A model generated the notes under the pieces. That model had not been told where the DNA came from. It saw nothing but the letters and a program-made list of their open reading frames with translations, and made no database searches. Below, piece after piece: positions 17,898-57,502 of a stretch of 64,000 nt of DNA (its first letter is position 1; each line of letters starts with the position of its first letter). Source of the stretch: Geosiphon pyriformis uo1 (Eukaryota > Fungi > Glomeromycota); assembly GCA_016748015.1 (NCBI GenBank), contig JAAOMT010000047.1:64977-128976 (forward strand), written 5' to 3'. A program made the position numbers and the translations under genes.

Positions 17898-19271
17898 CTA
17901 TTTCTTCCATGGTTGTTTAGCAGGTGAGACACCCATGGTTATACCAAAGTATGGTCCATTATTAAGCAAAAATTGGAATGGTTTTTTTGCATGAGCACAT
18001 TCCTATCAGAGAAAGTTCAAATTAATTTTTATGATGAAAAAAATGATATTTAAGCAATTTTACAAGCACAAACCTCGCTTTCATCTAGAAAATAGCCATC
18101 TGGATAATACTTTTCTCCTCCGTGACACTGATAAACGATTGTATTCTCAAGGAACTGATCATTGTTATTACAGTCACAATTATCCAATTCAATCCAATAT
18201 TCCATAATGGAGTGAAAATAATCCTCATTTTGTGATGTAGAACCATCATGCGGAAGATTCACCACAATATCATTTTTGTAGTTAACTCGAGCTTTTGCAA
18301 AAACGGCTTCATTCAGAGCTCGAGCAAATTGTAAATTGCCTATTCTTGGTTGACCATAAGTAAATAAACGTATTGGAATATGGGATGTCTTTGTAGATTG
18401 ATAAAACTCATAAGCAGCAAATGTTGCATAGACTACAAGATTTAAAAAAAGTTATTTTGAGGTTTGAAAAGAATATTTAGAAATCAGGAAAATAATAACT
18501 CACCAGCACCCATGCCATGTCCCACAAAAGTTAACCTGTAAATAGTATCGAGTCCTTTTATTTCTTCTATTAATTTCATTTCTTCAAAGATGCTTGAAAT
18601 ATCAAAATTAACACGCCGGAATTGATCCCAAAAATATTTGTTCACTTTTGCTTTCGCATATAATGGGTATTCGACCATTTTTCCATGGAACGCAGATATC
18701 CATTCGGATGGTAATAAGAGATTGCCACGGAAGTAGATAATTAGTTCATCAGGATCCCCAATAACACTCGAAACTAAATAAGTGAATATAATTTAGAATA
18801 TTGTCTATAGAAACAACTTGAAACTGCATTCTTTGATTGAATCAAAAACAAAATGATAATTAACAGTGAAAAAAATCTTTGTGATTGATGATATTTAGTA
18901 TTTAGCATACCATATAATGAATCTTTTAAAGAATAGGCTAAGTTGGCATACCAGGCATATTTTTGAAGAAGTCGTTTAGTGTCAGGCATTACATAATTCT
19001 TCGTAGGGCTCAACTGACTTCTTTTCACACCACCATTTGGAAAAGTTCTCTTGACAAATAGGTATGGAAAAATTGAGCTGCTGTTCTTCTTTTCAAAAAA
19101 TTGCCCTTCTTTTATGATTGTCGAGCTTGAATTTTGTTGATCTGTATTTTTTTGAACGATATTATCAAAAGTCTTTTGTTTTGAAAAAATGTACAGAAGA
19201 AAATAGAAAATTGTGATTAAAAAAAATAGTGTCCAATTTAAATATTTTATTGGATTGCTCAATTTTATCAT
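17898..19271 (-). CDS. Class-3 lipase-like protein, nucleophile Ser->Gly (paralog L1, ~364 aa)
   Basis: Exons 19271-18911, 18773-18504, 18432-18074 and 18002-17898 have GT..AG introns and an open frame. Features: N-terminal hydrophobic segment, IIYFRGN, FVGHGMGA, TYGQPRIGN, KNDIV, EYWI, NNGPYFG. Confidence 0.88.
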
Positions 19272-19396
19272 TGTAACGCTGAAGCTCTGTTTTTCAAGAC
19301 TATTGAAAAAATTTAATTATTTATACAACTTAGCGCGACACAAATCATACTCTTTTAAGGCACATTGATAATCTTTATTCCGTTATCACTTTCCCG

Positions 19397-19427
19397 TTAA
19401 TCCGAAGTTGATTCTACTTCGGATTAA
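19397..19427. promoter_or_regulatory. Perfect 12-bp inverted repeat upstream of L1, candidate dimeric TF site
   Basis: ttaatccgaagt-N7-acttcggattaa lies 126-156 bp upstream of the L1 ATG. The repeat is certain; its function is inferred. Confidence 0.4.
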
Positions 19428-19639
19428 GTGTGTCTTGGGTTTGTGACAAAAATTGTTTAATGATTGCCATTTTAAGTTATATTTACAAATTTAACTTGAC
19501 AAAATACAAAATATAAAAATCATTAAATTAAGAAATTGATTCATAAATCTCTTTTCAATTTATTTATTTTGAAACTAGAAATTGGTTTACTGTATCATCA
19601 CAATTTTCTTATTCAATATATATAAGTACAAGATCTGAA

Positions 19640-20400
19640 CCAATAATTTCACTGATTCTGTTCATCTTTTATATTGGAATTTTAAAACAGTATTTCTTCA
19701 AGAGTATGAGATGTAACATTATTTAAAAGTAAAAAAATATTTTTGTTGGAATTTTGTGTTGGAATATTAAGTTTTTGTAACCAATTAAAAAAGTGTTTAA
19801 TTGGATTCATGCACTACTTTTTGCATAATAATTTACAGATCAAGTATTTTTATCAACTTTTCTCATACATCTTGGAGCTTTGTATTTGTGGATACAAAGT
19901 AAAGTAATTTTTGAAGTTTTTGTAGTATTGCAACACAAAAATTTGTACCTCTGTCGTTGATTTTCTTGTTCCAGCAATAAAGTATTTTGAAAATGCTCTA
20001 ATTTATAATAAAAATGTTTTATCACAATTATAGACATTATCTAAATTCTATTTGATAAGAGTTCTTGAAATTCTTTGCAAAATTGTGGTAAATTATTTAA
20101 GATCTACCATTTGCTTCTTCACATTTTTTGATTTCTCTGATACCTTAGCACTTTTTGAAGTGAGTTAACTATTCTTGAATTTTTGAAATCAGTAATTTTT
20201 ATTAGTTCAACAAAATTGCTAGCTTTTTGAAGTTAAATATCTTTAAAATTTTAAAGATTTACATTTTTACTTTGGTTAAGCTATAATGCGAAAGATTGTT
20301 TACTGTGAAAATTTTTCGGTGTTCTTTCTCTTTTAAGTTTAAGATAGTGAGAGCTTTAATTTTCGCTAAAATTCCACTTTTTTTTCAAAATGCTATAATA
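19640..20400 (-). mobile_element. pogo/Tigger-like transposase remnant
   Basis: The minus strand gives HTH-like LKRERTPK..QSFAL*LNQ, then DNVYNCDET, FLCCNTTKTSKITLLCIHKYKAPRCMRKVDKNT, VNYYAK and FFNWLQKL, with many stops. Confidence 0.8.
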
Positions 20401-20899
20401 AAGAAAAATTTTAAAGTTCAATATTTTGAATAGAAAAGAAATCACTTTTTGTTAATCATTCACTAAAAAGCTACATCTTAATAAAAAACAGATATAACTT
20501 AATAAAAATTCACTCACTATATGTAAAGACCTTGATACTTTAAAACATTCAACAGCTGAGATTTTAAAATTTATTCTCTGTCAGGAATCTTTCGAAAGCT
20601 CATTGAAAGATTTTGATTCAAAAGAACATCTTAAACCATTAATAATCAATCTATACATGATTTTCCTTCTATATCAGTAGATTTATCCCCCATTTGAGTC
20701 AAGCTGGTAAAATAATTTTTTCTTTTGATATTCTGAATTAAATTAATATTTGAAAAGGTATTAATTACTTTAGAAAATTTTACAGATCTGAATTCTAGCA
20801 TAAGATAAAGTTTGAAAAAGGAAATCTTCAGCTTGCTTGTGTTATATATACATAAAATTTCTACTCTTTTGAGTATTGAAATCCAAATATAAGGCTTAC

Positions 20900-23800: not shown

Positions 23801-24900
23801 CTAGAAAACTATAGATTTTAAGTTTTAAATTATATTAAATTGTTAAAACTGATTATAATAAGACTAATATTAAAGTCTTAGAGGTTTTTGATTTTTTTAT
23901 GATGTTTAAATTAATAATTCCAAAAGTTTTGTAAGATTTACTGTTAATTTATTAATTAATTAATTATTAAGATCTTAAATATAAGTAGTAAATAATATAA
24001 TACCCCTTTAAGAAACAGAAATAAAAACTGAAACAGTTATTAAAGATAAAAAACCATTTTTTAAGTGTATTTTTTAATTGTTTTCTATTTACTAAGTTAT
24101 CTTTCTGTAATATTTAATGTTAAATTATTTTGATAACAAAAAAAGACCAAAAAGCATAGAATAAATCTGTTTTTAAACTTTTGATAAAAGAGTGGATTTT
24201 TTGTTTTTTTATTTTTCTTAAATTTACTTGTTTTATTAACTTTTAAATTGTCTTAACATATTCAATAATCATTTTTTCTGGGCTTTGTACTTTTTTTATA
24301 ATTTTATCTTTTATTTAGATATTAATACTGCTATTTTAAATTATTTTTAGATCTAATAATAAAAAAGTTCTATTTTGACCAGCATTTTCAAAAGACTTGT
24401 TTTGCAGTTCTATTAGTAGTATTTTTTGAAATAACCTATACAGCAAAAAATTCTTAAAAATATCTTTCAACTGTTTAAAACTTGTAATCATTGTTATATT
24501 GGTTTGCTGTGGCAACTTTTTCCAAATTTTTAAGCTATTTATAAGATCTTAAAAGTTTTCTCTAAACAAAGATAAAAAACTTATGTTTCGACAATTTAAG
24601 ACAGTCTGGATGTTTTAAAAGACTAGTAAAATATTTATTCTATCTTAAAATATAATAAAAGTAGATGTTTGAAAAAAAAGTCTGAATTGCTTGATAAAAG
24701 ATCAAAAATAAAAGCTGTTTGATAGCTTTTTTTGTTTTCGGTTTCTGTAAAAGTTTTGATTTGTTAATCTGCAGTTATTTATTTGTATATTTGTTGATTT
24801 AAGATTTCAAACTCAAAAAAAAGTTGATTAAAGGTAATTAAACATATTAATTGATTGATATAATTATTTCTGGCCTCAATTTTTTTTCAAAATATGCTTG
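20900..24900 (-). mobile_element. Heavily mutated Ty3/Gypsy LTR retrotransposon; RT-RNase H recognisable at ~21440-22400, outer limits approximate
   Basis: EKTVFITKYKTYKFTIMLFK*TN corresponds to EKTAFITKYGTYEF.VMPFGLTN. FVSVYLNNIIVYSKTW carries YxDD as YLNN at 22214-22203. Also FFFGLVFYY*KFIKRFFKI and NTDALF* (consensus NADALSR). Confidence 0.85.
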
Positions 24901-24973
24901 ATCAAAGAAATAAACAGTATATGCTGAATAAGTTTTGGCTAAATACTTAATTAAAAACCAATTACGAAAATAG

Positions 24974-25095
24974 AAAAATAGTTTATACTATTAACAAAAA
25001 ATAACAAGCTAATATAATTTTATGCTTTATATTAGTGTTTATTAAGATTTAATACCAGATATCAGTTGTATTTTTTAATAAATATTTATTAAATA
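24974..25095. repeat. Dispersed repeat copy B, on the 5' side of the Gypsy relic
   Basis: Aligns with 11041-11160. Confidence 0.85.
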
Positions 25096-26369: not shown

Positions 26370-27742
26370 TTACAAACACTTTTTGAATATAGTTCCAAAA
26401 TATGGCCCTAAATGAGGATCAGGGTACCCTGCTGATGAGTAACCTTTAGTACCAAGGTTACATTGCTAAAATAAAGTTTATTAATATTTAATATTATTCT
26501 GAACTAAATCTTAATTATAGAAATTAATTTTTCGTACCGCATTTTCATCACCATCTTTCATATTGTAACATTGATAAGGCACCAAAACTTTTCCCATCTC
26601 ATCTTGTTCCGTTGTTTGCATACAATCACAGTCGTTCTCTGGGTGTGATAACCATATTTCCATTTCAGTATGCACAAAACTTGGTCTTTGCATAAATTCG
26701 CGGGGCACCCAATCATTTGTATGAGTCACTCTCCAAACCCCACTTCGCCTGATTTGGAGAGACATTTTAGCATAATTGGCAAATGAGGGTGCCGCGAAAC
26801 GTGGTGCGCCAAATGTGATAACATTAATTTTATAGCGAAATCTAGGGTATTCGACTAACAAGTCACTTTTTTGAAAGTATGCTGCTGCTATTGTTGCGTA
26901 TACTATAAATAAAAAAAGTTAGAAAATTTGAATTCTTTAAACATTTAAATGCAAATTAAAACTCTAAAAATAAAGAATTTGAATTGAATTGAATTGAATT
27001 GAATTGAATTGAATTTTTTACACACACACCACCCCCTATTCCATGTCCAGTAAACCAAATATTCGTGAAATCAAAGCGATCAAAAAAAGTTTTGAGCTTT
27101 TTATACAAATAAGGTAACATCTTTTTTACATGTCCGTTCCATTCAAGGTCAACAAATGAACTGTGTAATTCAGTTTTTTCGAATTTTATTTGACGCTCAT
27201 TCCACTTTGATTTATCAAATGTATTGCCTTTGAAATAAGCAATCAGAATTTCCTGTCCATTTGGTTGAATTATGTCAGCTTTTAAAAAAAAAATTTAGGT
27301 CGAATTAAAAATTTTGAATTTTCAAATCAATAATTTTCCCAAACTTTGATTCATTTTAAGAACTTTGCTTACCAACAATACCGTATCTTGCAACCACACC
27401 TCCCACATCATTTTTAGACAAATCGCAGTATCCAAGGTTTGAATAATGTGCTAAAAGTTGAAAAAGTTTTAATAAAGATTTATTTCTTACAAAAGGTTGT
27501 TTGACTCCATAATAATTTCCACCGGCTCGTTTTGTAAAAAGAATTTTCGGCCTCTTTATAATATTGAAATTTTGACTTTGATTTGAATAAAGGATATTTA
27601 AAGAAGTTATTCGATCGGATTTTAATATCAAAGGATTGATTGAAAAGGTCGAAACAATAATCTCTTTTAAGGAGGTGAGAAGAATTGAAGTTTTAAAAAT
27701 AATGAAAGTAAAAACAAGAGCTGCTTTGTTGATTTTCATCAT
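26370..27742 (-). CDS. Class-3 lipase-like protein, nucleophile Ser->Gly (paralog L2, ~359 aa)
   Basis: Exons 27742-27373, 27278-27030, 26902-26538 and 26465-26370. Motifs: YSNLGYC, AYFKGN, WFTGHGIGG, TFGAPRFA, TNDWVP, EIWL, DCDC, HLGPYFGTIFKKCL*. Confidence 0.88.
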
Positions 27743-31526: not shown

Positions 31527-31528
<2 letters not shown>

Positions 31529-31600
<72 letters not shown>

Positions 31601-31605
31601 TTGTG
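31529..31605. repeat. (GT)n microsatellite
   Basis: Visible GT run with a few interruptions. Confidence 0.95.
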
Positions 31606-33036: not shown

Positions 33037-33037
<1 letters not shown>

Positions 33038-33078
<41 letters not shown>

Positions 33079-33090
33079 ATGATGATGATG
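33038..33090. repeat. (GAT)n microsatellite
   Basis: Visible run; a (CAG)n run follows at 33175-33200. Confidence 0.95.
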
Positions 33091-35049: not shown

Positions 35050-36694
35050 CCTCCACGCTTTTATAAATTTTTAAATTTAATTTCCGAAAAACGGTAATTC
35101 AATGAAGGAATAAATGAATCAATCAATCAATCAATCAATCAATTAAATATTAAAACTTTTTTCCCCAAATACCTTTCTAATTCAGTTTCCCGGAAAAAAG
35201 AAATTTTATGAAATTCAATACCAGAATAAAGAATTAAGAATAAAGAATATATGTATTAGATAACAAATAAATAAAAATATTTTATTTCAAATTACACTTG
35301 ATAAAAATCAAAAGTAAAACGTGATCAAAAACTTATCTTTTTTGAAAAATGTGATCAATATTTCAAGTGTGGCACAGGCGATCGGATTAACTTCTAAAAC
35401 GGGTATTACGATTTCGATGCTTGTGATCATTTTTAATATCTAGTAATTAATATCTAGCAATTAAATATCTAGCAAGTAATTTTTGAAACTTCACATCATG
35501 GTAGGGGCTGAGTAACCGCGATCTTTTAACAATAGAAATGCTGACAGTAACCAGCCCGACAACCTTTGAATCCAGACGGATTTCGGCTTAACGCGGAACT
35601 GTTGTCGCTTTTTGATATTACTTTGTAAAATTTTGATTATAGTGCGCTTTTCGGAATTCTGAAATTCCCCTGGATAAAATCTAGAATCATGACTATCGTG
35701 ATGGCTCATGGCGGATCGAATGATTCTGAAACAACAATCTGTTAAAAACTCTTTGGAGATATTTGTCATGATTCCGTGAAATATGTGCGGAAAAAATTTA
35801 TCCTCTCATCAATATAGGTTTGTTAAATATTTGAAATGCATTAATTTTTATGTTTCAGCAGTTTTAAAATATTGCATTCGGATGGATAATTTAATAATCG
35901 TAATGTAAGAATAAAAATTAATTCATCATGCCTTGGCATAGAACCAATAATCCTCAGAGCTGGTTGGTTGGTTGATTGGTTGGTTGCTAAAAAAGTTGAC
36001 CGCTAAAAAAGTTGACCACCAAAAAAGCTTTGTTTAATATTAGTAAATCTATGGACTATTTATTTTGGAAATCAAATGTATAAATCACATGATAATACTT
36101 TTCATAGTTTCGATTACTATTATAAAAATATCATTATTATTATTATTATTATTATTAGCATCATTGATTTCTAGTAATCTCATGAATCATGACTTTAAAT
36201 TTTTAAAGTTCAATTTCTTTGATATTATACAGTTTCAACTTCATATGGATATCATGCTATCCGAAACATAAAATTTTATTATAATAATTAATTTGAGAAT
36301 CCCATATATCGTCAAAATAAAACTAGAATTTCAACTATCTAGATGCCTATTACAGAAACAACAAATAAATAAGATGCTAAACATGTTTGGCAAAGATTAC
36401 TCGAAACTCCTAGGTTAGGCGCGGGAATTTCTCATCTATCTTGATCAAAAAAAAAGTTTTTTTGAATTTTTATTATTAGGTTCCTTATCAAATTTTTTAT
36501 GAATGAATATTCTCCTAATGATCTTTAATTGTCATATCAGCAGCCTAAACATTCAAATATCCAATCTACTTTTTAGCTTACCGTTTAGGATGAAGAGGAG
36601 TAAACAAATCTTTTTGGTAAAATATTTATTACCTTTTTTTATACAAGGTTTAGCATTTACTATATTTGGAAATGAGAAATGAATCTGTTATCAT

Positions 36695-36699
36695 ATTAC

Positions 36700-36760
<61 letters not shown>
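36695..36760. repeat. (TTA)n microsatellite
   Basis: Visible run; it produces the spurious poly-L ORF. Confidence 0.95.
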
Positions 36761-36763
<3 letters not shown>

Positions 36764-37026
36764 CAATACCTCGAAACTCCATTTATATCAAAAATTAAAC
36801 GAAAGAAATAGTAGAAATTCATTTGGCATATTAATTCGTACAATGGAAACACCAAAGTTTAGCTCAAAGCTCAATGAAAGTTGAATTAATTCTGTTAAGA
36901 AAATACGGTTTTCTTTTATTCATTTAAAAAGCCCAAAACATATTCTCAATGTAAAATATATCATCATATATATGCATTATTGTGAAGTAATAAACTAATT
37001 GGAAAATAATAAACTAAAAAAAAAAC

Positions 37027-37027
37027 C

Positions 37028-37079
<52 letters not shown>

Positions 37080-37088
37080 GCAACAACA
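37027..37088. repeat. (CAA)n microsatellite
   Basis: Visible run; it produces the spurious poly-T ORF. Confidence 0.95.
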
Positions 37089-38283
37089 CTTTCATATTCA
37101 ATTTTAGTGGTTCTAACTATGAATTTATTAGTGACTTCATTTGTGCATCAAAAAAAAAATTCGTATTTCCAAAAAAATCAAGTCGATATATGTAATGCAG
37201 AAAACTTGTAAACTTGTGCTTTTTCTCATTGGCTTATGCTGAATCGTTCCATTTTTCTATTTGAAACTTGAAATTTAAGAATCAGCCTTTAAATTCGGTT
37301 TCTTGTCAATGATGATATCAATTTTTATCATTTCAAGAATATTTTCGGACCAGTTGATAAGGGCTGAAACCTTTTTTTTTTTTTTCTTTTTTTTTCAGAT
37401 CTTTCCCAAAATTATTCCACCCACCTTAACTATACGTCAGATCTTCCATTAAACTAAATTAAAATTTTATCTGTCCAGACCATTATGTGTCCATCTTACA
37501 AAAATCATTGGCAGCACCCTTGTACATCATCGGTAGATTTAAAACTAGCCGAAATTAGATAGAATCTCAAGATGCATTTTAATGAGAAAATCCTTCTTTT
37601 CGGAGTAATCTGCTACCTTTCATTCAACGTAATAATAATAATAATAATAATAATAATTTTTTTTTTTGTGTGGTTTCATCTTTATTTCTAAATCAATCGT
37701 GTGATCTGATTCCCATAGATTAGTATTAAAACTAATCAAATCCGATTCTATCGCGTGTACGGAAAAGCTTTGAAGTAGATTGAATGCAAGCATGTATTAA
37801 ATTAGGGTTTGACCAAGAACACAACCACCATCACCCCAACCACCACCACTCACTCACTCACTCACTCACTCACTAATTTACAACTACATTAAAATGTATG
37901 ATATGATACCCAATAATTTTTATTAAACACAACCTTAATAAAAAGACTAATAGTTAACAGGAGATTTTTTTTATTCAAATAAATCATCCATATCTATTTA
38001 ATCGTCATTTTTAAAGTACACACACTAAAAAAGAAAAGAGTCCCACTGTTTTCTCTGTGCTACCAAGCAAAAAGAGAAGGATATTTAAATCCAGCTTTTT
38101 TTGGGAGCAATTTTTTGCTTTGAATTTTTTCACCATCTTTTCGTACAGCTTTGAAGATAAACAGTTATAATCTGTTCTTCTACTCCAATTTTTTTTGACA
38201 TATATATAATCATTTTGTCTCTTTTACAATACTACCCATCCATCAATAATTTACTACCAGCATTACATTTATCTTTTTATTAT

Positions 38284-38323
38284 CACCACCACCACCACCA
38301 CCACCACCACCACCACTACCACC
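38284..38323. repeat. (CAC)n microsatellite abutting the RhoGEF start codon
   Basis: caccac...cactaccacc lies immediately before the ATG at 38324. Confidence 0.95.
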
Positions 38324-40331
38324 ATGTCTTTACTACAAAAGCTAAAGAGCACGAGGCGAAGTTCAAGTATACATCGTTCTCAATCCATATCATCACCATT
38401 ATCATCACCACCAGTCGTAAAAGTTTCTACAACAGAACCTCACCAAATCTCCTCACAACCTTCAACTTTACCAAAAATGTCTGCTTTCAAAAAACTTCAT
38501 ATTCCCTTCTGGCATAACAACGCAAAAACTGCTCCCGTAAAAGACCAAGCACTAGTCGCTGCTGAAGAAGAATTGAAAGCTGCCTCTACTATTTCACCTT
38601 CATTACCGTCGATAAAGAGAAATCAAAAAACTTTGAGCATTCTTCGTACAGACGTTGGAAGGCGTACAAATACTATTTGGTCTGAAACTGTTGACGAAGA
38701 TTTAATACAACATTTATCTTCGATGGAGCAGAATCGTCAGGAGGTACTTTTTGAAATTATCCAAACTGAGTCCGAGTGAGTATTTTTGAATTTTTATTTA
38801 TGTGATCTTTGAATTTCGTTTGCTTCTATTTCTGGTTTTTCTCCCAATTCTTTCCCCAAAATTTTTCCTCCATTCTCAACTATTTTCCCTCGAAAAATTT
38901 CCTTTTCGACACTTTTCATTTCTGCGTTACTCTATCATCGCACAGCCCTTGTAACCCTTGTGACTTTTTAGTGTTCAAAAAGTTTTTAAATGTAACACCA
39001 AGCATTCATTTTCACCCCCCCCTGCATATAAAATTATCTACCCGTGTATTCACCACCACCACCACCACCACCAACAACAACTATGTACTCGATATTTTTT
39101 CCTTGTGTGCAATTTTTAATTCTAGATGCCTTTTTAATAGAACTTTTGATTGGTTTTTTTTTTCATTTCCCCCTTCTTCATAACGAAATTAAAAGGCAAC
39201 CAACCAACCAACAATACATATACATACATAGATACATACATACATATATATATGCGTACACATTACCTTTCATTTCATCCACTAATCACCTGATAATTTT
39301 CTTCTAATTCATAGATACGTTCGTGACCTTAAATTAATTGAGCAAGTTTTCATTCGACCAATTAAAGCTGCCGAGGCTAAATATCCACACAAAAATATCA
39401 TACCACCAAATCTTAACAAAGTTTTCAATTCTATCTCTTACTTTTTATTCATTCATGAGGTGATCAGTAACGTAAGTGATGAAGAATTTTACAATCATTC
39501 AAAACCATATTTTTAGACTTTTTTTAATTCAAAATCTATCCATCTTTTTTCAATACTATCTAGTGCTTAAATGAACGTCAAGAACATCAATCACCACTAG
39601 TAAGAAGCATTTCTGATATTCTTTTGGCTTATGTATGGATCTTTCGTGCCTATGCTCCATACCTCATTCACTACGAAGAAGCATTGAGTGAACTTAATGA
39701 TTGTTTACGTCACAAGACAACTCTCGGAAAAATTGTAAAGAAACAACAAAAGGTTGCTTCATGCCGAAACATGCCATTGACTACCTATTTGTTAAAGCCG
39801 TTCCAACGTCTCCTACAATATCCACTTTTGGTCCGAAATTTACTCAAGTACACTATACGGGAAGTTGGATCAGATTACGAGAACCTTATCACCTTACGAA
39901 CAAAACTCGAAACAGTGCTTCGAGATATTGAAGAACAAAAACGTGCACATGAAAATAAAGAACGGCTTCGAGCTCTTGAAGCTAGAATACAAGGCCTTTC
40001 AGGTTTTCGTTTGGCCGTTGATAATCGACTTTTGATTCGAGAAGAACCTGCTTGTCAAAATTCAGTTTCCCTGGAAAAACAACCATCATTACGAAGATCA
40101 TTGACGGTAACATCATCACCATCAACAAATTTAAAACGGCACTCTGTTCGAAATCTTTATACGCTCGAGTGCAATGATATCGTTCTTTTGGTTGAAAAAA
40201 CTGGTGAAACGCGAGATGGTGAAGCCATATATCGACTTCTATCTCGACCACCAACAACACCTTTAGACGAAGAGCCAGTGATCATTCATAAACCACAAGA
40301 TTCTGGAATTTTTTATGATGATGATGAATGA
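38324..40331 (+). CDS. Dbl-homology (DH) RhoGEF with partial PH domain (~458 aa)
   Basis: Exons 38324-38775, 39315-39471 and 39564-40331. DH motifs: RQEVLFEIIQTESEYVRDLKLIEQVFIRP, AYAPYLIHYEEAL, LTTYLLKPFQRLLQYPLLVRNLLKYT. PH-like RLLIREE...YTLECNDIVLL follows. Confidence 0.92.
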
Positions 40332-43300
40332 GAAAGAGAGGACATTGCGAAGGTCGTCTGTGCCTAAAATTCTAGAAATTTTTGTTGGAAATTTTCGGAA
40401 AAAAACTTTTCATTCATAATCAAATCTATTTGGCAAGACGATCGTATTAATGGACCCTATATAATATCGCTCTCAATTCCCATATATATATATATATATA
40501 TATAATAATCTTTGTATTCTTATATACATAATATCCCGCAGGCGGGTCTATTACTTAAATACCCGTCTGAACTTGTAAATTTTTAATAATCCCTTGCAAA
40601 TTTCACAAATTATAGTCCATTTTCATCTCAATCGTCTCTTTCCCGACAAAGTTCGTCTCTTTCAATCGAAATTTAAATTCCAATCTTCTCCCATTGGCCA
40701 TTGGCGTTGATATCGATATTCCGTCGATTTCTTAACGTTGAATCGGCTTTTGGTTTCCGAACATGTGTTAAATACCTCGGTCAGGATATTTCACATTAAC
40801 CCCTGACTTCCACGATTCCCGAATGATTGATGGCTCGATTGTTGTCGTGATATTGCTAAGAAGATCAGTGGTGTGGTGTTGATTTCAGATTTTATTTTCT
40901 TAATAGAGTTGTGAATATAGATTCTCTCTTCTATCACCTTAGTTTTTTTACCATCACCATCTTTACCTTTACCTTTTTCTCTCTTTAGACCAAAAAATTA
41001 TCCAATAGATTTCCAAAAAATAGACTTTTCATCCCCCCCCCCCCCACACTATCTCACCCCCATCTTTTTAATAATCTACCTTATTATTAACGCCCCTTTT
41101 TTCCAATCAACACCATATCATTGTGATTTGCCGCTATGCCGTGATTTCAACCGTTGCTCTTGACGAACCTGAGATAGCGTTTTTCCCGCTTGCGAATAAT
41201 TCTACTGGTTCTTGCTCTGATGTATATATCGAGATCTTTGACTATCATAGGATTTTGGAACACGACTCATCCTAGCATTCCTTATGCGTTGATGCTCAAT
41301 TCAAGCTCCGAATAATATGATTTGAATCCTTTCAACAATAGCCTTACATTCGTCCTTCACCATCGAGATTCCATTCACATCCACTATTTTAATGAATTGT
41401 GTGCCGATCGTTAAAGACAATGAACTTTTCCCTCGACCAACCACAGCCACCCAAGATTAGTCAAATTCGCAATTCTTTTTTTAAAATTCCCTTGCTCCTT
41501 ATCTCGTTTTGATTTTTTCTCTCCTTGCGTTATTCTATGCCATTCGCATTCCTTTTCGTTTATTAATTAGTCTTTTTTTTTTCCCACCTCTTTAATTCCC
41601 TTTGTGGCAAATAAGTTTTTTTCCGTTTTCTAAATTCAATTCAAAATTCCTTTTTCATATGATTTCCCGTTTTATGTATTTTTTTACCCAGAAATTTTAT
41701 CATCTTTTCACTAACCTTTCTTTCTTTCTTTCTTCTTCATTGGATTGAAGAATACGTACTCGATAGTTTGCTTTTTTCTTGATATAACGCATTTCTTTTC
41801 ATTCCATTTTACCATATCAAGCTATCGTTTTATTACGCATTCAATTTTACACTTTCTTTTATCCCGTCTTAAATATCTTTTCTTCGATATCAAAACGAGA
41901 CCTGATCTAAAATCACCCTTTTTTCAAAGATTTACCATTTAAAACAATTATAGTATCTTCCCTAAAATCCGTCCCGCTTTCTTATTTGATCTTTTCATGG
42001 TTTGGCTATTATCTTTGGTTGGTCCGTTAGTTCCAGTCTTGGCTCGAAACGTGTTACACGATCCTTTTTATTCACCACACAATTCAAGAAAACACAGGAC
42101 ACGCTCAAAATGGGTCCAGAAGCAATCAGTGATGAAATCTTCTTTTTGATGAGGATTCTAATCGTGGACTTTTTAGTCAAAGCTTTTTTTATGCATCCTT
42201 GTCGTATTTAGCTAAAAGGTTCCCCAATTTAGGAACACAGTGTTAATCGGGGGATAATTAGTAATAGCTGACATAGTGTAATTAAAAAGTGATCATAGTA
42301 GCGGAAAGAAAATCAAAAAGAAAAAAGTATTTATTGTTTACCCATTGTTTCCCATCAAAAAATTCGACTTTTCCAATTCATCTTGATTTATAGAAAGCCT
42401 TTTTGTTCCCTTTGTTTGGTTTGGTTTGGTTTGGTTTGATTTGATTTGATTTGGTTTGTTCTTGGCTCATAAATCAAGTAGTTTATTGAAAGTCGATTTA
42501 GCAAGTAAAACAGAAATTGAAAAATAAAATATTCTGAAAACAAGCAGCGATACTACCCGATACTATCCGATATAAAATTGAGAATGAAAAATTTGATGCT
42601 GAATTACGTTACTAACAATTGAGCGATCATATATATATATATATATATACATGATAAAATGACAATAATGCTTGTACAAACATAAGTGTACTTATCTATT
42701 AAAGATGATAAAAAAAATGATATTACAATAACTTGCAATATTAAGGTTATATTCTCATAAGGATATTTAATCTTACAATTGTGAAGAGTGTGATTATTTT
42801 TCCAAGATTTAAAAAAATATTTGTTTTAAGAATAATAATTTTTTATTCAGGTATTTTGAATATTATAAAAATTTTTAATATATTAAATATAAAATTGGTA
42901 AAAAAGTATAAATTAAACCATTTTTTTTCTTTTCTTGTTTTGGTATACAAATGCTAAATCTTAATGCTTTTTAGTGAAAAAGATTTGATCTTTTTTAACC
43001 TAACTGGGATCTTTTGTAAAGCAAAATCCTCAAAGCTCGAGGCGAAATAACGTCAATGTAAACAGATGGGTGAAATATTTTCACTCCGAGATTTACAGCC
43101 AAGCATTACCTGATTAAGATATTCAACGGAGCGTTGAAATCTTTGATCGCCCTTAATTGTATTCGATTCGCTATTTAGTATGTATCTATTTATACCTTCA
43201 TTGTTTCCTGTTTGTCAGATAAAATATATTCCATCCTTGACGGATGTTTCTTTTTCCCTGAGACAAACAAATTTTAAGGTTACGATCAATTACATTACTA

Positions 43301-47161: not shown

Positions 47162-47209
<48 letters not shown>

Positions 47210-48390
47210 CATTATAAAAAAAATTATGTACGTTATTACTTTTTTTAGATTTTAAAAGTTCAATAAACCATATTTTTTTTATGTTACTATGCAAGGAAAT
47301 TGAACCAGTTACTAAAAATAAACCTGAAAATTTTAAAGTATAATAATTATGTATAAAATCATTTCAAATAAATTTACTATATAAAATTAGTCATAATTTT
47401 TGATAAAAAATAAATTTTTTATATAAATGTCAATAATATAAATATAAATATTAATGAAAAATATGTTAATTAATTTTAAAATAAAAAATTAAAATAAAAT
47501 ATTGAACATTAATATTTATTTTTCCAAAAAAAGAATTTGAACCAGATTATATAAGATTTAATTTTTTAATAATCACAAAACCACAGCGTTTTTTTTTGAA
47601 TAAAAAATATCTTTAACTTATAAACTCAAATAATTATTCTGAAATATAGCATAAACAAATAAATTTAAATATTTCAAGAATTTGAACCCATTTACACTTG
47701 TATCTTTAAAATACTTAAATTTGATTTCGATAATTTCAAAATTTAATGCTAAATTAAATTATTTCTTATAATTTTTTCTATTTAATTTCAAAAATTATAT
47801 TAATGTATGCAAAAATTTATTTTAGTCAAAATTATCATTTTAAATTAACCTGATATTATTTTTTTGTGATTATTTACTGTTTAAAATCTTGATGTGCAAA
47901 AATATTTGGCAATACTAAAATTTTTAGTTGGAATAAGAAACTCTTGAAACTGAATTATCTTGATCAACAAAAAATTATTTTTATATAGTAAACTTATTTT
48001 ATTTAACAATAGCTTGTTAAAATGAGATATCTTAAATTCATGCTAATTCTTTCATTAAATACAATTAAGTTTACTACTGACTATTATAAATTATATATTA
48101 CTAAATACAATTTAATCGCTACTCGCTTTAAGGGCACATTTTTCTTGCACACTTACCAATCATAATCAAAATTCTTTTGGAAAATTTCCACTTTTATCTC
48201 TTTCCTTTAAAAGGCTTTTAAAAGCCAATACAATTCAGAGTTTCTGACTACAAAGAATAGAATTAAAATTATTAATTAAAATAATTAAAAATGAGCTCAC
48301 AGTTTTCTCTCTCTCCGATTTATATCTCTCGCGTATATAGATCTTAAATTGTAAGGTTCAATTCCTTTGGTCGAGGATTTTTCTAAAATA

Positions 48391-49945
48391 TTAAGGTTGA
48401 AAAGGTCGATCTGAGGGGCATAACCCCATTAAAAATCCAAAATAGGGTCCATTGTGTGAAGATGATTCTGGAACAAGGAAAGGACTTGCTTGTTCTCCCA
48501 CATTACATCTCTGGAAAAAAAGTGAAAAAAGTATTTAACGATAAATTTTGATTGGATATTTGAACAGATTAAATTCAATCAATCTTGAAAAAATTATTAC
48601 CGGATTTTCTTCGATATATCCTCGATCTCGTATCAGTTGACCAATACACTCATATACCCAATTTAATCCACACGAGCAGGACGGTTGGATCCAATACTCT
48701 GTTTGATGGTGAACATAAAAGTCACTGCGTGTATTATATTTCGGTGGCTGTTTTGGGACATAGTCATCTGTATGCGTGACGCGAAATATTTCAGCGCCAA
48801 GAATATTCTGAACATAATTAGCGAATCCGGCATTACCAATGCGTGGCTGACCAAATGTATAAACTGAGATCGCGTATCTTGGCTTATATTTTTTAAAGTA
48901 AAGCCCTGCAAACACGGCATAAACTATAAGTTGAGAAAATAATATTTCAAAATTTTTAAAATAAAAACTTTCTCGTTAGCAATCGTAAACAATTTGAAAA
49001 GACCTCACACAATATTTTTGATTTTAATATATAACATACCACCATTAATACCATGTCCGACAAACTGAATAGGATATGGATGTGTTTCATTTTGCATCAC
49101 TCGAATCTTTTCACGTAATGGCAAAATCATTCTTTGGAAATTTCTTGACCACTTTTTATCCACTAATGTCCCAGGTATTACAATAATCTCCCCAAGCTCA
49201 TTATTAGCATAAGGAATCCAAGAGGCAAGTGGTGAAGTATCCAAGCGAGCTGCCCGATTTTGCCATTCTTCTCTACTGAGATCTGGCACCTTGAAAACTA
49301 CAAATAATTTTCTTGGTACAAAGCTTTGATAAACCTTTGCTTTTTGGATAAAAATATAAAAAAATGAGGCTTTAAAACCTCAATTGAATTTTAAATTTAT
49401 AGAAGAAATAGAATTTCATTACCAAAAAATCCATTAATCAATTGATCTTGCGGAGTTTCATTTTTATTCAAACAATAAGATAGTTGTGCATATTTTGCGG
49501 ATAGGGCCAAAGTTTCCCAAATTTTACTTTCAAATACTATCGGTCTAAAATAGGGATCTGAGACAAATCTATTTACATTGAGGTTTTTTCCAAAGTCTAG
49601 TCGATGTTGAATCTGAAATTTTTTATCTGGAGAAATAATTTGGTCTTTTAGTTGAATAAAATCGAAATTGAGATTTGATGATCGTTTAACTTGATTTGAC
49701 GAAAACTCAAAACTCTGCTTTTGAGAGCTTATTGTTTTATTAAATCCAACATATCCTTGAATAAACTGTCCATTTGGTAGTTTGCTTTTAAGGAATTTTT
49801 CGAAAAATGTTCTTTCCAGAAATAAGGTTGAAAGGACTATAATCCAAATGATGAAAACTTCACCCAAAATAAATAATATGTATTTTTTATATCCAAATTC
49901 ATACCCGTGAAATTTCTTTACTCGTGAATGGTTCCATAAGTTCAT
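48391..49945 (-). CDS. Class-3 lipase-like protein, nucleophile Ser->Gly (paralog L3, ~421 aa)
   Basis: Exons 49945-49423, 49339-49040, 48923-48601 and 48510-48391. TM segment YILFILGEVFIIWIIVLSTLFL. Motifs: YAQLSYC, FVGHGING, TFGQPRIGN, TDDYVP, EYWI, SCSC, HNGPYFGFLMGLC. Confidence 0.9.
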
Positions 49946-50442
49946 TGTATTCTTTCTTTGATCATCAATATTATCTTGCTTTAATTTTTCAAAGAAAATA
50001 ATTTGATATAAACTTCAAAATATATATATTGTGTTTCTAAAAAGGAAAATTTTAAAGATATCGACGATTAGACTTTGGTCAGAAAATCTGTAAAGTTCAC
50101 AATAAACAAAATATAATAGATTATCCTTTTTAAACATTTAAAAAGAAAATTTACGGTGCTAGATTTATCCGATGGAGAAAATTAGTCTTTCAAACTCCAA
50201 AATTTTGAACATCATATATTTTAAGGGGCAACAAATTTGATTTATCTGACTATTTGAAAAATTTTAATAGGAATTCATGATAATTTGTACTAAAAGTATC
50301 TAAATAATTAATTGCATATTGTTAGCGTGGAGCCTTTTCTTTTTGCCCTACCAATAAAACTTCTCAACAAATGGGCATAATAAGTGAGATCATAACAAAA
50401 AGGCTTTAAAATTTATTAGCTACAAATCATAAACGAAATCTA

Positions 50443-51809
50443 ATGATGAGCATTTTAAAGAAAATAAATTCCTGGAATCAGTGGCTTTTTTTTGCTTTTT
50501 TATTCTTTTGCTCATATTCTCTTATCAGAAAGACAAATGAAAGGCAGAGACTTTTCTTTATGGAAACTCAATCCAATACTTCCCTTAGCTTAATTAAAAG
50601 CGCAGAATTTTTTTTGAAAAAACCTTCAATAAAAAGTTCAGACTTCCAAGTGTCAGTTAATGAAAATATTCGTTTATTAAAAGGATTCCCGAGATGGAGT
50701 CAAAAGCAAAATTTGAGACAAAATATTTTTCAAAGATCCGATTCTCCTGGGTTTGATAGGCGAACAAATGTAACTGACCAAGAACTTTTGGATCAGTTTG
50801 AAAAAATGGCGAGATATGCACAACAAAGTTACTGTCTTTTTGAAGAGAAGGATCATTTGGAAGCAAATATTTATGGTAAAATTCAATTTTTAATAAAACA
50901 GACTTTCTTGGTCTCTTATTAAAAATTTACCTTAAATCTTGGTAACTCATTTAAACAGCAACTGTTAAAGTAGATTTTATGACTATGGAATTTATTGTTG
51001 TCATTCGAGGGGTAGAATTAAGTCGCGCCAACTGGTTTATACGACCAAACTTTTTAGTACCATATGCAGTCGATAAAATATGGAGTTGGATTCCAAAAGT
51101 TGATAATCTTTTTTACACCCATTTTACCAAAATTCAAAAAAAACTATTCGATAGAATTGAAGCCTTCCGAATTTCAAAAATCGATTGGCCAATTAAATTT
51201 GTAGGACATGGAATTGGTGGCGGTAATTATTGACTCATTTCCTTTAATTTTACTTCTGCTCAAAAAGTCATTTAAATTCTTATTATTTCAAGTATATGCC
51301 GTTTTCGCCGGTCTGAATTATCGAACCCGACTTCCTCAACTGGAGATATTTGTTTACACATTTGGTCAACCACGAATAGGGGACAAATATTTTGCACTTT
51401 ATACAAATTTTAAGCTTTCCAAGCGAGTTTTTCGGATCACATATACAGACGATTATGTACCAAAGCTCCCATTCAAAATTTTTCCACAAAGTTTTGACGA
51501 TGAGTTTTATGTTCATCATGAGACAGAATACTGGATAGCTTCAGATTGTGATTGCTACAATTCTGTGTACAAATGTGAAGGAGAATTTATTCCTGAGCTT
51601 GGGTTTTTGGATGAGTGTGGTGTGAGTATAAAAATTCAAAATTTTAAATTTCAATAATTTGTGAAACATTTTATTTGAATGGAAATTTTATTTTTCTTTT
51701 ATAGTTGTGCAATAATAGTGCTTATGAACCGAACTCAATCATCAGGGGGATTTCATCACATAATGGTCCTTATTTTGGACATTTGATGGGGTTCTGTCCT
51801 TCAGTATAG
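50443..51809 (+). CDS. Class-3 lipase-like protein, nucleophile Ser->Gly (paralog L4, ~376 aa)
   Basis: Exons 50443-50875, 50959-51222, 51293-51621 and 51705-51809. Motifs: YAQQSYC, VVIRGV, FVGHGIGG, TFGQPRIGD, TDDYVP, EYWI, DCDC, HNGPYFGHLMGFC. Confidence 0.9.
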
Positions 51810-52514
51810 AATGGTTATTTGTAAAAGTTTACATAAAATGAAAATTCTATTTTTTAAAATTTCAACATTAGATCGACAAAAGATAGCTGGAAGGAAGAAA
51901 TTCAATAAATTTCCTTATCATGCTCATAATGCATTTTACCCATCTATATCGAATAAATATCCTTTAACTCTCTATGCATAGTCGAATTTACTCTAGCCAA
52001 CTGACGCCAATTTTTAAAAAAAAATTTTTTTTTGCAACTTCCTTTAAACATTTCAGAGATTAGTTAATTTCTAAAAGAGAGAGACCACGATGAGAGAATA
52101 TTAACGTTATAACATATTTGTTATTATAGATGTAATACTTTTTCGTAGATACGTATAATTTCGGACTGAAACCACTCACAATGTCATCGCATCGCATTAA
52201 CAATAAAGTATGCGTTGATAAATATGAGTTGAATTTAATGTGCAATATGTTACAAATGTAAACTATTTTGTGAATATTAATATTAAAAGATGAATGATAA
52301 CATACAACTCGTAAGCTTTTTTTACTTTTTCAAAATTATTTTTTAAACACCGAGCAACTTAACTCATACTTTCAAAAATTGTAAAGGTTCCCAATAAATT
52401 TTAAATAATTGGAAATTATTACGCTTTCAAATAAAAAAATTTGAGAATTCATCTTTTATTTCCAACATTAGTATATCACATGCTTTTTTATCTATCGCTA
52501 TTTTCTATAATTAT

Positions 52515-54005
52515 TTACTCCAAGTTTTTATCAAATCTACCTTCTTTAACAGTTTCTAGTTCTGACAACCAAGGAGGCTCCTGAGTTGGACAAATCCCCA
52601 TCACTGACTCAAAATATGGGCCTTTATGTGAAAAGTCTACGATCTCATTATATTGTGCATTGCACCACTGTTTTTTAACGAAAAGAAAAACTTTAATTCC
52701 TTTATTAAATTTTGCGTGAGAAACCAAACATAGAAACCTCTAAAATCTCACCTGATTTTCCTCAAAAAAACCATCATCAACAGTATTTCCAAAACATTTA
52801 TATACAACGGGGTTTTCACAAGGACAAGCAAGAGCAATCCAATATTCCATATTATGATGTAGAAAACCTTTAAATTTTATCAGAGGCATTTGTGTTATGT
52901 AATCGTTTGAATGTGTGACACGATAAACGTAAATTTTATCATTTGATTCGACAAATCTTGCAAAAAATTTGTTGCCAATACGTGGTTGACCGTAAGTGTA
53001 TACGTCAATGTTTAAATGAGGCCATCTTCTGTTTAAATCCAAGGCGGCAAATATCGCATATACTCAGAAAAAAAAAATTTTATTGGAGAATCAAAGATTT
53101 AAGAAAGACAAAGTAACACGCGAAAAGCTAATCGAAAAAAACTTACCACCACCCACACCATGCGCCACTATATTTATATTTTGTACCTCGGTAATACCTG
53201 CTTTGCTGACAAGATTTCTAATGAGATTAGCACCTGATAAAGATCCTGGTTGATGTTCTTGGTGAAATTGATTGTAAAATTCTGAATCTACTCGTGAGTT
53301 TTCGTCGCTTAGATAATAGACAAATGAGGTACGTCTTTCTTGCCACTCTCTTACAGATAACTCAATTCCCCTTATGTATAAAATTATTTCTTCTTTTTTG
53401 AGGATTGTTTTTGCTGGGTATGTCGAAAAAAATTATGCTCGTATGAAAATTAATTGTCAAAAATATTTGCCAAAAAAAAACAACATACCGTAAATACCGG
53501 GTGCAATTTTACCATTTTTTTCATTCAGACAATACGCCAAACTAGCGTAATAGGCAAAATATTTCAATTGATTTAAAATTTCAATATTTTCCAGACGTAT
53601 TTTTCTACCTTCCAAAATATTTCTTTTTTGGGGTTTGCCAAAATTTCCTACCAACTTTCCATGATAAGTAGAATTCTTTGAAAAATTAAGAAGTCTTTGT
53701 TTTCGAAATTTGTGTGGTTGAATTGTTTTAGTATTGTTTTGATGAATCTGAACGGTTTTTTGGTTGCTTACAAATCCTGAGAAACCATCTGCTTTGTTTG
53801 AGTTTTTTTTCTTATCAAGGTTTGTATCGGGATGCGAGATAAAACTTTTATTGTTCAATTGAAATGTATAATCCTCTTTTCGACAATTTTTTTCGTGACT
53901 TAATGGCTCCTTATTCAATTTTAAATAAAAGATTGAACAAATTACCATTGCTAAAATTGAAAGAAAAATCTTCCAAAGTATGAAAAAAGTTTTATCTTTT
54001 ATCAT
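52515..54005 (-). CDS. Class-3 lipase-like protein, nucleophile Ser->Gly (paralog L5, ~415 aa; alternative upstream ATG at 54101)
   Basis: Exons 54005-53489, 53413-53147, 53062-52752 and 52667-52515. Motifs: YASLAYC, LYIRGI, IVAHGVGG, TYGQPRIGN, SNDYIT, EYWI, ACPC, HKGPYFESVMGIC. Confidence 0.87.
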
Positions 54006-56109
54006 TAAAGTGTATCGAGTAAAATCGAGATTGAAAGAAGTTTTGCTTCGATTGCAATGATTCAATATATAAAATTTTCTATAAAAAGATATTTCTTGCA
54101 TCCTTTATATCGTTTTTATATACGAGATTTTTGGTTTTACTTTTAACATAAATCCAGACAATTTTACCGATATTTTCGGCACAAAATTTACCGGATATGT
54201 TGCTATATGAATGAAAAGTGTGAGAAAACTTTTACCGATGCCGGAGGATCTAGATCAGGTTTTAGAAAATTGTTATAAATTTGTTATTGGGCCGGGTCCT
54301 TCATAAGATGTCGGTTTTTTTTTTTGCGCTTAAAATTCCGGTATCCCCGGATGGTTATATAACCAAGAAATTCATATTCCGACTTTTAAATTTGATAGAA
54401 AGAGTTTGCACAATAACTCTGTCTCACAATTTTACCTAGCATATCAATGATTTATTTGTTCATTAAACCGGAAAACAAAAAAAGAAAATTTATTAAATCA
54501 AAAGGTAATTATTTGTTTCAAACCTTAGGCAAATGAAATTACAATTATCCGAAACTAGGAAATTTCCTTGAATTTTAACTTCCCTTTACTATGATAATCA
54601 TTTGTCATCCTAATAATGATATCATTATTACTAATATTCAAACTAGCTTGGGATTTTTTTCATATTTTTAAAAATAAATGATAAAAAAATCTAGGATCTG
54701 TATTTTTTACATTCAATTTAAACTCTATTCTATCAAATAAAAGTAGTAAAATTTAACCAAACCAAATCTAAATTTATGAAATAAAGACCAGAAATTTAAT
54801 CTATATGCACCTTTGTATTTTTGAGGTTATCTTTTATAATGATAAAGACTTTTCAAAATTAAATTTGAGATAAAAGCGAATCGAAATATAGAGTCTTGGC
54901 TATGTTATTTCAGCAAAAAAATTATATAAGATGTCAAATATTAGAATAATACTTTAACATCACTTACAAAGTATTTTAATTACTTTGAGAAATCCTGTTA
55001 ATTTTTCCGTTCAAAAGTCAAATAAATAAAGTGTTAATATATCTCCAATATGTAAAAAAATTTTCAATATTTCTATTATCTCATTATTTTTTTGTGTTTG
55101 TTTAAACAATATTGACTAAAATGACTTGCCTCTTAATTTTGGAAATACCTTTTCTTTTTTTTTACTTAATTCTACCATATGTTGTGTAAATAATTAAATT
55201 GAGATTATATTTAGATATATAAGCAACTGATAAAAATATAAACAATGTATAAAGTTTTTATAAATACAAGTGACTTCTTAAAAGCTAAATGACTAAAATC
55301 TATTTTCATGTTTTTTTTTTATTTTGCTTTTTTTTGATATTCCAATTTGGTGATTTCCCATTTTCTCATGGTTATATTTGTTTCAAATTTACTTTATAAA
55401 TATTTAATTAACATAGGATAAATGATCTCCTTCATTGCAATTTTTGACAGAATAATTTTTTGGTAACATTGCTTCAGTAAATACCGAAAATTCGATCATG
55501 TTCTAACTTTTGGTATACTTTCAAAATCAACAAACTTACAAAAGTTTATTTTGGAAATAAGGAAAGATCGGAGTGTTGTAAAACCATGAATATACTCTTC
55601 AGATTTATGTGTATCCTGAATATCAAAGTTTTTTTCTACCTTTTAAATTGATACCGTTTCCACTTTTAATTTCTATGAATTCATTCGAATCAGAATTTCA
55701 AAGGAAAACATTATTAAAATTCTACCAGGCTAGATAAAATGTCGGTGTTTTAACGATCGTGGTAATATTGAACGAAAATCACATTAATCATTCTTCCGCA
55801 TCACTCTGAAAAAAAAAAAAGAAGCTTATTGAATTTTGCTTGTGACCCCTCTTAACATGAATGATGCACTTGAGTTCCGTACTCTTCATCTTGTAATCAA
55901 TTTAAACAAGTCAAATATTTATGTTGTATTTTGATAAGATCAGTTATTTTCCCGATCGCCCGGAATTTCTTTACTTCCAGAGTTTTCATCACGAATATTT
56001 AATACGACATCAGAATGTAATCTGTTTAGCATGGACACAATAGAAATTTTGATTTTGGAAAAGTCCATTAAAAATGAAATTTTAAACAAGTGATAACGAA
56101 AGCAGGCAC

Positions 56110-57502
56110 ATGTGGCCCTTCTTACGCATTTCTTCTGTGGGTGTTGAATCTTGGCGTAAAAATAAATTTCTAGAGAAAATAAACTGCATGATTTTAGCTG
56201 GCACAATATTGGGCTTTTATTTCCTCACGACGAAAGGCAGTGAGAAATGGAATAACATAGAACTAGCAATGAGTGACATAAATGAGACCATTTTAATAAA
56301 GGAGAATATATTCCAAAAAAGTGTATCAAAATATCCTCACAATATCAATAATTTTTCAATTCCCCTAAACCCAAAATTTCCTCAACTAAAAGTAAAAAAA
56401 TCATTAAAAGAGAAACCTAATTTATTTATCAGCACGATTGATCGTGATAGAGATCATTACGATGAACTAGGTGATAGAAAAGGTGGAAAAATATTAGTTA
56501 ATGATCAAGAACTATTGGAAAGACTTCGAAAGTTTGCTTTTTTTGCGAGTTTAGCGTATTGTTTAGATGACCAAAGAGGAAAAGTGATTCCAGGAATTTA
56601 TGGTACTTGTTTTTTCGACTGATTTCATTGCAGCTTTTAATATCTTTACTAATTATTTTTCCATCCAGCCGAATCTATTGTAGTAAAATCAAGTGAAAAT
56701 TCACAAAAAGAACTTATAATTTACATTCGTGGCTCAGCAAGCATCCAAACATGGTTTAAAAGGAAATTTAATTTGGAACCGTATCCAAATATTCCGAAAG
56801 CAAGGGTTGATAAATCATTTGCCAACCAATTTTATAAGCTGTCTCTAAAAGTAAAAGCAATGATACCTGAGGTAGCTTTAAAAAGGCTTAATTTTGTTGG
56901 ACATGGATTAGGCGGAGGTATGACCTTTTTATTGAAGCTTTGAAAGATTCTCTTGCTCTCTTAAACGTTTGAATTAATTTCACCTGAATATTTTTCATAG
57001 TGTTTGCAGTATTATTAGCTCAAGATCTAAGTGAAACATGGGATTACGTCGAGATGGCAGTATATACATTCGGTCAACCGAGAATTGGCGATAAATATTT
57101 CGCGTTGGAGATCAATAATTGGATAGCCGTTCATCGAGTTACTTTTTATGATGATATCGTGACTCGATTGCCACTTGATAATGAAAGAAACGGATTTATG
57201 CATCATGGGACTGAATTTTGGATTTCACCTTATTGTGAATGTGGTGATTATAAAGTGTACAAATGTCTAGGAACAAGATCTTTGGATGGGTTTACTGATG
57301 AAAATCCAGTATGTTCAACTTTAAAAGTGAGATGTTGCTGTTAAAAGAAAAGGAAGTACTAAATGAGAATAATTATGATCTTTTGTAGAGTTGTAGTAAC
57401 GCTTTTAAAACTATTAATATCAATTCCCACAACGGTCCTTATTTCGGTCAATATATGGGGATTTGTCCGGAATACACGCCTTCATGGGCATTAGATTTTT
57501 GA
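56110..57502 (+). CDS. Class-3 lipase-like protein, nucleophile Ser->Gly (paralog L6, ~387 aa)
   Basis: Exons 56110-56602, 56669-56917, 57001-57308 and 57389-57502. Motifs: FASLAYC, IYIRGS, FVGHGLGG, TFGQPRIGD, YDDIVT, EFWI, YCEC, HNGPYFGQYMGIC. Confidence 0.9.

Follow-up and report, generated by a model that had tools for sequence, protein, structure and literature searches.

Six genes in a 64,000-nucleotide stretch of Geosiphon pyriformis uo1 DNA (contig JAAOMT010000047.1, positions 64,977 to 128,976 of the forward strand; hereafter the window) encode proteins that, judged by profile and model comparison, are genuine homologues of the class-3 (Rhizomucor/Thermomyces-type) lipases and have Gly at the position of the nucleophile Ser. 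These genes, L1 to L6, are a sample of a tandemly arrayed, fast-diversifying family of approximately 300 genes. On balance, and with modest confidence, we favor the reading that the products of the six genes are secreted or membrane-anchored and bind, without hydrolysing it, a ligand that is probably a lipid or another hydrophobic molecule. Proteins that descend from hydrolases and no longer catalyse are already known; a single-lineage family of this size, made up of nucleophile-less secreted lipase-fold proteins, appears to lack an earlier description, and our literature searches found nothing on this serine-less lipase-like family.

Gene structure and transcription

A six-frame scan detected four stop-free exon pieces around the nucleophile elbow of each of the six genes. 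GT..AG introns restore the reading frame at three homologous positions common to all six. The first follows ..(G)IY, the second comes immediately after G-H-G-x-G-G (phase 1), and the third precedes the last exon, which starts with Cys and bears the HxGPYF motif. Exon ends were joined by script solely to read out the residues on either side of candidate junctions; the window exons were profile-searched piece by piece, and full-length analyses used public models (P0009, P0013, and others). Codon read-out places the triad Asp in all six genes and the HxGPYF His in five, with Asn at this position in L1. L1 also carries Ser in place of both Cys of the predicted disulfide that would join the N- and C-terminal regions (AYS.. 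and ..GVSP). The original prediction, made from the DNA letters, had given the elbows, their strands, the three synonymous Gly codons, the Asp and His tallies, and six intact, cleanly spliced frames, and the six-frame translation and codon read-out agree with it on each of these points.

Its assignment of the genes to Lipase_3 also holds. With a curated cut-off of 22 bits, PF01764 matched the third-exon pieces of all six genes at profile positions 77–138 (31–50 bits; L1, 41 bits). The second-exon pieces gave weak matches in four of the six (profile positions 2–75/80), with only L1 (25.2 bits) above the cut-off. A PF01764 match is also precomputed on P0009, the L5 protein. Automated annotation had been expected to call such genes lipases; NCBI labels five of them (KAG9306043 and KAG9306047–KAG9306050) "hypothetical protein", and L1 is without a public gene model. 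The public model of L2 reads on past exon 3 and leaves out the last exon (26465–26373, minus strand), and those of L3 and L4 are N-terminally short.

L5 is transcribed and spliced as modelled, and its Gly codon is not edited. RNA contigs from a public run (X1) skip exactly 53063–53146 and 52668–52751 with zero mismatched letters. Both skips are 84 bases long, are bounded by GT..AG on the minus strand, and equal predicted introns 2 and 3; the original prediction had named a lack of spliced transcripts as evidence against it. One contig covers the AHGVGG codons, and the Gly codon is unaltered. Run X1 is a small run and the sole one holding part of 48350–54150; a look-up of contigs encoding P0013, the L6 protein, found none on record.

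Fold and conserved sites

An AlphaFold model of the L5 protein, built from a family alignment of 96 members (A2), has a confident domain at residues ~115–390, with a predicted local distance difference test score above 90, and a low-confidence linker of ~100 residues ahead of it. The top Foldseek ranks for this model are the Rhizomucor miehei, Rhizopus, and Thermomyces lipases and feruloyl esterase A, with target template-modelling (TM) scores of 0.77–0.78 and E values of 1e-13 to 1e-14 against R. miehei lipase (1tgl/3tgl). In the family-profile alignment with Thermomyces lipase, fvGHgiGG falls on FTGHSLGG, so that the Gly lies on Ser146, and the family Asp falls on Asp201. A hydropathy scan found an N-terminal hydrophobic stretch of ~19 residues in the first exon of all six genes, compatible with either a signal peptide or a type-II anchor. 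The proteins end 20–35 residues past the HxGPYF motif.

Across the 96 aligned members, the nucleophile column holds Gly in 73, Ser in 9, and another residue (Ala, Arg, Asp, Cys, Tyr, or Phe) in 13, and the triad Asp is present in 95. The HxGPYF His, which we take to be the catalytic His from the position of the motif and from the Rhizomucor C-terminus (the hidden Markov model alignments end earlier), occurs in 72 of 86 members, with ~16% lacking it. Six Cys columns are conserved at 91–100%, and the invariant Cys coincide with the disulfides of fungal lipases. Where one disulfide Cys is lost its partner is lost as well, in L1 and in all three family members without the first Cys, as expected of a folded, disulfide-bonded protein. 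The lid Trp is kept in 71 of 93 members. The oxyanion column, which follows the R-G of strand 3, holds many different residues (Pro 22, Lys 12, Asn 11, Glu 10, Arg 7, and others).

We compared the family with the secreted class-3 lipases of R. miehei (1tgl/3tgl/4tgl), Rhizopus (1lgy/6a0w), and Thermomyces lanuginosus (1dt3/1tib) and with Aspergillus feruloyl esterase A. The Geosiphon proteins share with these enzymes PF01764, the same fold (TM up to 0.78), the G-H-x-x-G-G elbow, an Asp loop (T-x-x-D-x-V-P), a C-terminal His motif, three disulfides, the lid Trp, and an N-terminal targeting segment. They differ in having Gly (or Ala, Arg, Asp, and others) as the nucleophile-site residue, no conserved oxyanion Ser/Thr, VDxxF where the enzymes have VHxGF, C-x-C and H-x-G-P-Y-F motifs of their own, a ~100-residue disordered linker, and ~300 copies in one genome; relative to Thermomyces lipase, a stretch of ~29 residues after the AYC motif is missing. 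Among the hallmarks of an active class-3 lipase, Asp and His are thus present, whereas the Ser of G-H-S-x-G and the oxyanion Ser/Thr are not. Ester hydrolysis is very unlikely, judging from the alignment, because both the nucleophile and the oxyanion residue have been lost.

The persistence of Asp and His over deep divergence despite the loss of Ser, along with a nearly invariant His before the nucleophile position and a nearly invariant G-x-G-G elbow geometry, could indicate that the proteins are still enzymes, with the His–Asp pair serving to activate water or a group on the substrate, as Ser-less α/β-fold enzymes do, or with another residue as the nucleophile. We regard this as improbable. 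The 96-member alignment contains no invariant Ser, Thr, or free Cys elsewhere that could stand in for the nucleophile, the invariant Cys being those of the lipase disulfides. The oxyanion residue is unconserved, residues tolerated at the nucleophile site include Gly, Ala, Arg, Asp, Tyr, Phe, and Asn, and the His itself is absent from L1 and from the members noted above.

The reading we favor is therefore ligand binding, not cutting. Each protein would consist, in order, of the N-terminal hydrophobic segment, the disordered linker, and a disulfide-bonded Rhizomucor-type lipase domain that would have lost its ester-hydrolysing chemistry while retaining the fold, the lid Trp, and the Asp–His pair, and that would probably hold a lipid or other hydrophobic molecule at a membrane surface. 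The retained lid Trp, Asp–His pair, disulfides, and N-terminal segment suggest a protein that lies outside the cell or on a membrane and still makes use of its lipase face. By analogy, hydrophobic-ligand binding is the most likely use, and its feasibility is suggested by PDB entry 1gt6, which according to its title is Thermomyces lipase S146A with oleic acid, a Ser-less fold that still holds a fatty acid in its pocket. That protein was made by mutating one residue of an active enzyme, whereas the Geosiphon family is natural and diversified. The non-hydrolytic extracellular role put forward in the original prediction thus stands as the best reading, in keeping with the hydrophobic N-terminus and the disulfide Cys; its proposal that the ligand is a lipid is a guess.

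Family size and taxonomic range

In the 128.3 Mb G. pyriformis assembly, a DNA pattern for G-H-G-x-G-G found 329 sites compared with 30 in a reversed control, and the corresponding G-H-S-x-G-G pattern found 22 + 41 sites (63) compared with 6 + 5 in controls. PF01764 matched more than 171 exon pieces genome-wide, from 783 first-look candidates. Nineteen of 20 sampled GHG sites on other contigs sit in an intact exon-2/exon-3 pair, and paralogues are 25–50% identical. The original prediction had described a family of six; those six genes are real and represent a small part of the approximately 300 copies.

We built a profile (A1) from the third exons of the six genes, and a search of 1.84 billion representative proteins with it gave 4623 matches. 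Gly predominates at the elbow position of the 150 best representatives, which also include cases of Ser, Ala, Arg, Asp, Cys, Tyr, Phe, and Asn. Arg at the nucleophile position marks a clade of seven among these 150. A well-supported Arg subclade comprises P0019, P0062, P0095, P0121, P0128, and P0149 (Geosiphon), with GHRLAG or GHRLGG elbows that place a bulky charged side chain at the Ser position.

The serine-less family is so far confined to Geosiphon, as far as the searched collections reach. All 21 non-Ser representatives whose source was looked up are from Geosiphon. The nine Ser-bearing look-ups comprise four from Geosiphon and five from other sources (an insect, an amoeba, Panaeolus, Massospora, and Paraphysoderma), the latter five each having one or more GHSLGG elbows. 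Metagenome contigs scanned with the exon-3 profile yielded 80 loci, with Ser at the elbow in the 71 that were readable, the HxGPYF motif in none of the 80, and no relative outside Geosiphon. One metagenome locus with a GHGLGG elbow (L060) was considered as a relative and rejected as an unrelated, intron-less homologue without HxGPYF. This Lipase_3 homologue (L060:1501-1755; contig Ga0169931_10061764, GC 0.26) has an uninterrupted ITGHGLGGGFAI elbow and represents an independent natural case of Ser-to-Gly replacement in an AT-rich organism. An ESM Atlas feature search returned generic Lipase_3 clusters only. A word-index homologue search returned only 4–7 matches, because the paralogues are too diverged, and gave no view of the range of the family.

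History of serine loss

We built a tree from 145 domain rows with the nucleophile position masked, some rows being spurious duplicates from a loose motif rule. The Geosiphon family forms one clade relative to the outgroups (Shimodaira–Hasegawa-like approximate likelihood ratio test, 99), and Ser-bearing members are scattered within it. An approximately unbiased test, run under a quick LG+G4 model on a group named after inspection of the tree, rejects a topology in which one branch separates the outgroup and the nine clear Ser-bearing members from the rest (p 5e-5, with a log-likelihood 238 lower). This rejection of a single Ser-to-non-Ser switch argues for several changes at the nucleophile site, by repeated loss or reversion. 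The proposal of one Ser-to-Gly change before the duplications is accordingly too simple, given also the range of other residues found at the site. At the codon level, Ser AGY, the commoner Ser codon here, is one transition from Gly GGY. The intron directly after the elbow is common to the canonical GHSLGG paralogues of Geosiphon.

Selection on the family

We estimated ratios of nonsynonymous to synonymous substitution (dN/dS) from our own Nei–Gojobori counts and from tree-based parsimony counts. Synonymous sites are saturated among the six window genes. For two young tandem arrays, on contigs C378 and C371, pairwise values lie between 0.65 and 1.1, dropping to ~0.4 in older pairs, compared with 0.09–0.14 for a canonical GHSLGA pair. 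The tree-based estimates for the young arrays are 0.86 and 0.84, not significantly below 1. Low-dN/dS windows (0.08–0.2) coincide with GQPRxGN, the Asp loop, and E-x-W-I..C-x-C. In both arrays, sliding-window dN/dS is highest, with peaks of 2.4–4, in the helix that precedes the elbow strand. The tree-based dN/dS of this helix is 1.4–1.6 compared with 0.73–0.78 elsewhere (Fisher p values of 0.009 and 0.40 for the two arrays), for a region picked after seeing the data. We do not claim positive selection on the helix, as the tree-based values are not significant against 1.

A neutral simulation at the observed synonymous divergence predicts 4–6 new stops per copy, and none is seen; the probability that a whole array stays stop-free under neutrality is ~1e-13 to 1e-15, a rough value that assumes a star tree. 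Neutral decay is excluded because the frames stay open. The frames and the fold core are kept, and the surfaces are free to change. The original prediction had the genes maintained by selection and had named a dN/dS near 1 between orthologs as evidence to the contrary. Open frames and the core motifs bear out maintenance; the young-paralogue mean of ~0.85, indistinguishable from 1, does not, and comes close to that contrary value among paralogues.

These young-array values, the pairwise range up to 1.1, and the state of L1, which lacks a public model, the His, and two Cys, are what would be expected of decaying relics of a former lipase expansion, neutral and not yet disrupted. We consider such decay extremely improbable. 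Frames are open in 19 of the 20 sampled copies and in all six genes here, and the explanation in effect fails the stop-codon simulation. It is also opposed by the core windows, by the lower values of older pairs, by the retained intron positions and splice sites, by Gly being kept through three synonymous codons, and by the correctly spliced transcript of L5.

Comparison with other non-catalytic relatives of hydrolases

The plant proteins EDS1, PAD4, and SAG101 likewise use a class-3 lipase-like domain without hydrolysis, and they appear as distant structural matches (7xdd, 9jbn, 4nfu, 8b28). The EDS1/PAD4 matches are far weaker than those to the fungal lipases (query TM 0.39–0.42) and cover the lipase-like part only. 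EDS1 and PAD4 keep the Ser. The plant proteins have a C-terminal EP domain, which is absent from the Geosiphon proteins, are cytosolic or nuclear, and have few members. Cholinesterase-like adhesion molecules such as neuroligins are Ser-to-Gly pseudoenzymes in which the fold is reused for binding. Vn50, a serine-protease homologue with a Ser-to-Gly replacement, acts through competitive binding, according to a review (PMC13301370). Both share with the Geosiphon family the substituted nucleophile and, on the reading favored here, the reuse of the fold for binding or competition, and differ in being animal proteins of other folds or families, with small family sizes.

Possible roles

The size of the family, its tandem layout, and its fast divergence also suit a recognition or effector-like role, which we keep as the main rival to hydrophobic-ligand binding. 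Here the proteins would again be non-catalytic and the pocket irrelevant, the fold providing a scaffold with a variable surface that recognizes proteins or glycans (of a symbiont or of non-self, for example), mediates adhesion, or acts as a decoy or competitive inhibitor. Such a scaffold would account for the huge tandem expansion, for the low identity between paralogues, and for replacements that cluster on surface segments, among them the pre-elbow helix; the bulky Arg of one subclade, placed where the nucleophile should be, would block a lipase pocket, and Vn50 offers a precedent for competitive binding. A pocket-independent scaffold does not, however, require conservation of the lid Trp or of the Asp–His pair, and the helix excess is neither significant against dN/dS = 1 nor free of post hoc choice of region. 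We rate the scaffold as rather unlikely, though a serious contender.

Several points weigh against hydrophobic-ligand binding at the cell surface as well. The call of a signal peptide or anchor comes from the hydropathy scan only, and RNA support comes from one small run and one of the six genes. The dN/dS of ~0.85 in young copies implies that many replacements are tolerated, and some copies may lose function. A purely passive binder also leaves the near-complete retention of Asp and His unexplained.

If the proteins bind ligands, the approximately 300 of them could form a ligand-capture or recognition system of the Geosiphon–Nostoc endosymbiosis, a speculative extension that we think unlikely. 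Cyanobacterial glycolipids or fatty acids, for example, would be bound at the symbiosome interface, and the Asp–His pair would be kept for ligand handling, not hydrolysis. To our knowledge, Geosiphon is the only fungus with an intracellular cyanobacterium, and it is a sister model for the origin of arbuscular mycorrhiza. The lipid import of arbuscular mycorrhizal fungi, which the original prediction gave as context, is only partly apt, as Geosiphon hosts Nostoc and is not a plant-colonising fungus of this kind. A search of the genome gave no match to PF18325 or PF17951, two domains specific to the type I fatty-acid synthase of fungi; made without a positive control, this search is weakly informative. 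Its size, its lineage specificity, and an odd selection regime, with frames and core kept and surfaces variable, make the family a candidate for Geosiphon interface biology or lipid economy. It also provides a natural experiment on why the lipase Asp–His pair and lid persist after Ser has been lost.

Coordinates and neighboring features

Table 1. Positions of the six serine-less lipase-like genes and their key codons, in window coordinates.
Feature	Coordinates	Strand	Details
L1, serine-less lipase-like gene	17898..19271	−	six-frame translation, open reading frame pieces, PF01764 exon matches
L1 exons (4)	~19271-18912, 18766-18504, 18432-18074, 18002-17898	−	
L2, serine-less lipase-like gene	26373..27739	−	elbow GHGIGG; NCBI KAG9306043 (P0037)
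L3, serine-less lipase-like gene	48394..49945	−	elbow GHGING; NCBI KAG9306047 (P0006)
L4, serine-less lipase-like gene	50443..51809	+	elbow GHGIGG; NCBI KAG9306048 (P0011)
L5, serine-less lipase-like gene	52518..54101	−	elbow AHGVGG; NCBI KAG9306049 (P0009, 396 aa)
L6, serine-less lipase-like gene	56110..57502	+	elbow GHGLGG; NCBI KAG9306050 (P0013, 361 aa)
L1 elbow GHGMG (GHGMGA)	18522-18508	−	Gly codon GGC
L2 elbow GHGIG	27048-27034	−	Gly codon GGA
L3 elbow GHGIN	49058-49044	−	Gly codon GGT
L4 elbow GHGIG	51204-51218	+	Gly codon GGA
L5 elbow AHGVG	53165-53151	−	Gly codon GGT
L6 elbow GHGLG	56899-56913	+	Gly codon GGA
Triad Asp codon, first base	L1 18271, L2 26714, L3 48765, L4 51451, L5 52904, L6 57153		..ND/DD.. 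loop
L1 Asn at His position of HxGPYF	codon from 17963	−	codon read-out

Two short open reading frames adjoin L1 at 17274–17670 on the plus strand; they have the look of Sel1-type repeats and no Pfam match at E <= 0.01. Within 36000–42000, an open reading frame at 39624–40331 on the plus strand matches RhoGEF (PF00621, E 1.6e-17), beside open reading frames at 38324–39183 without a Pfam match. The RhoGEF region has a strong negative GC skew (−0.2 to −0.3).

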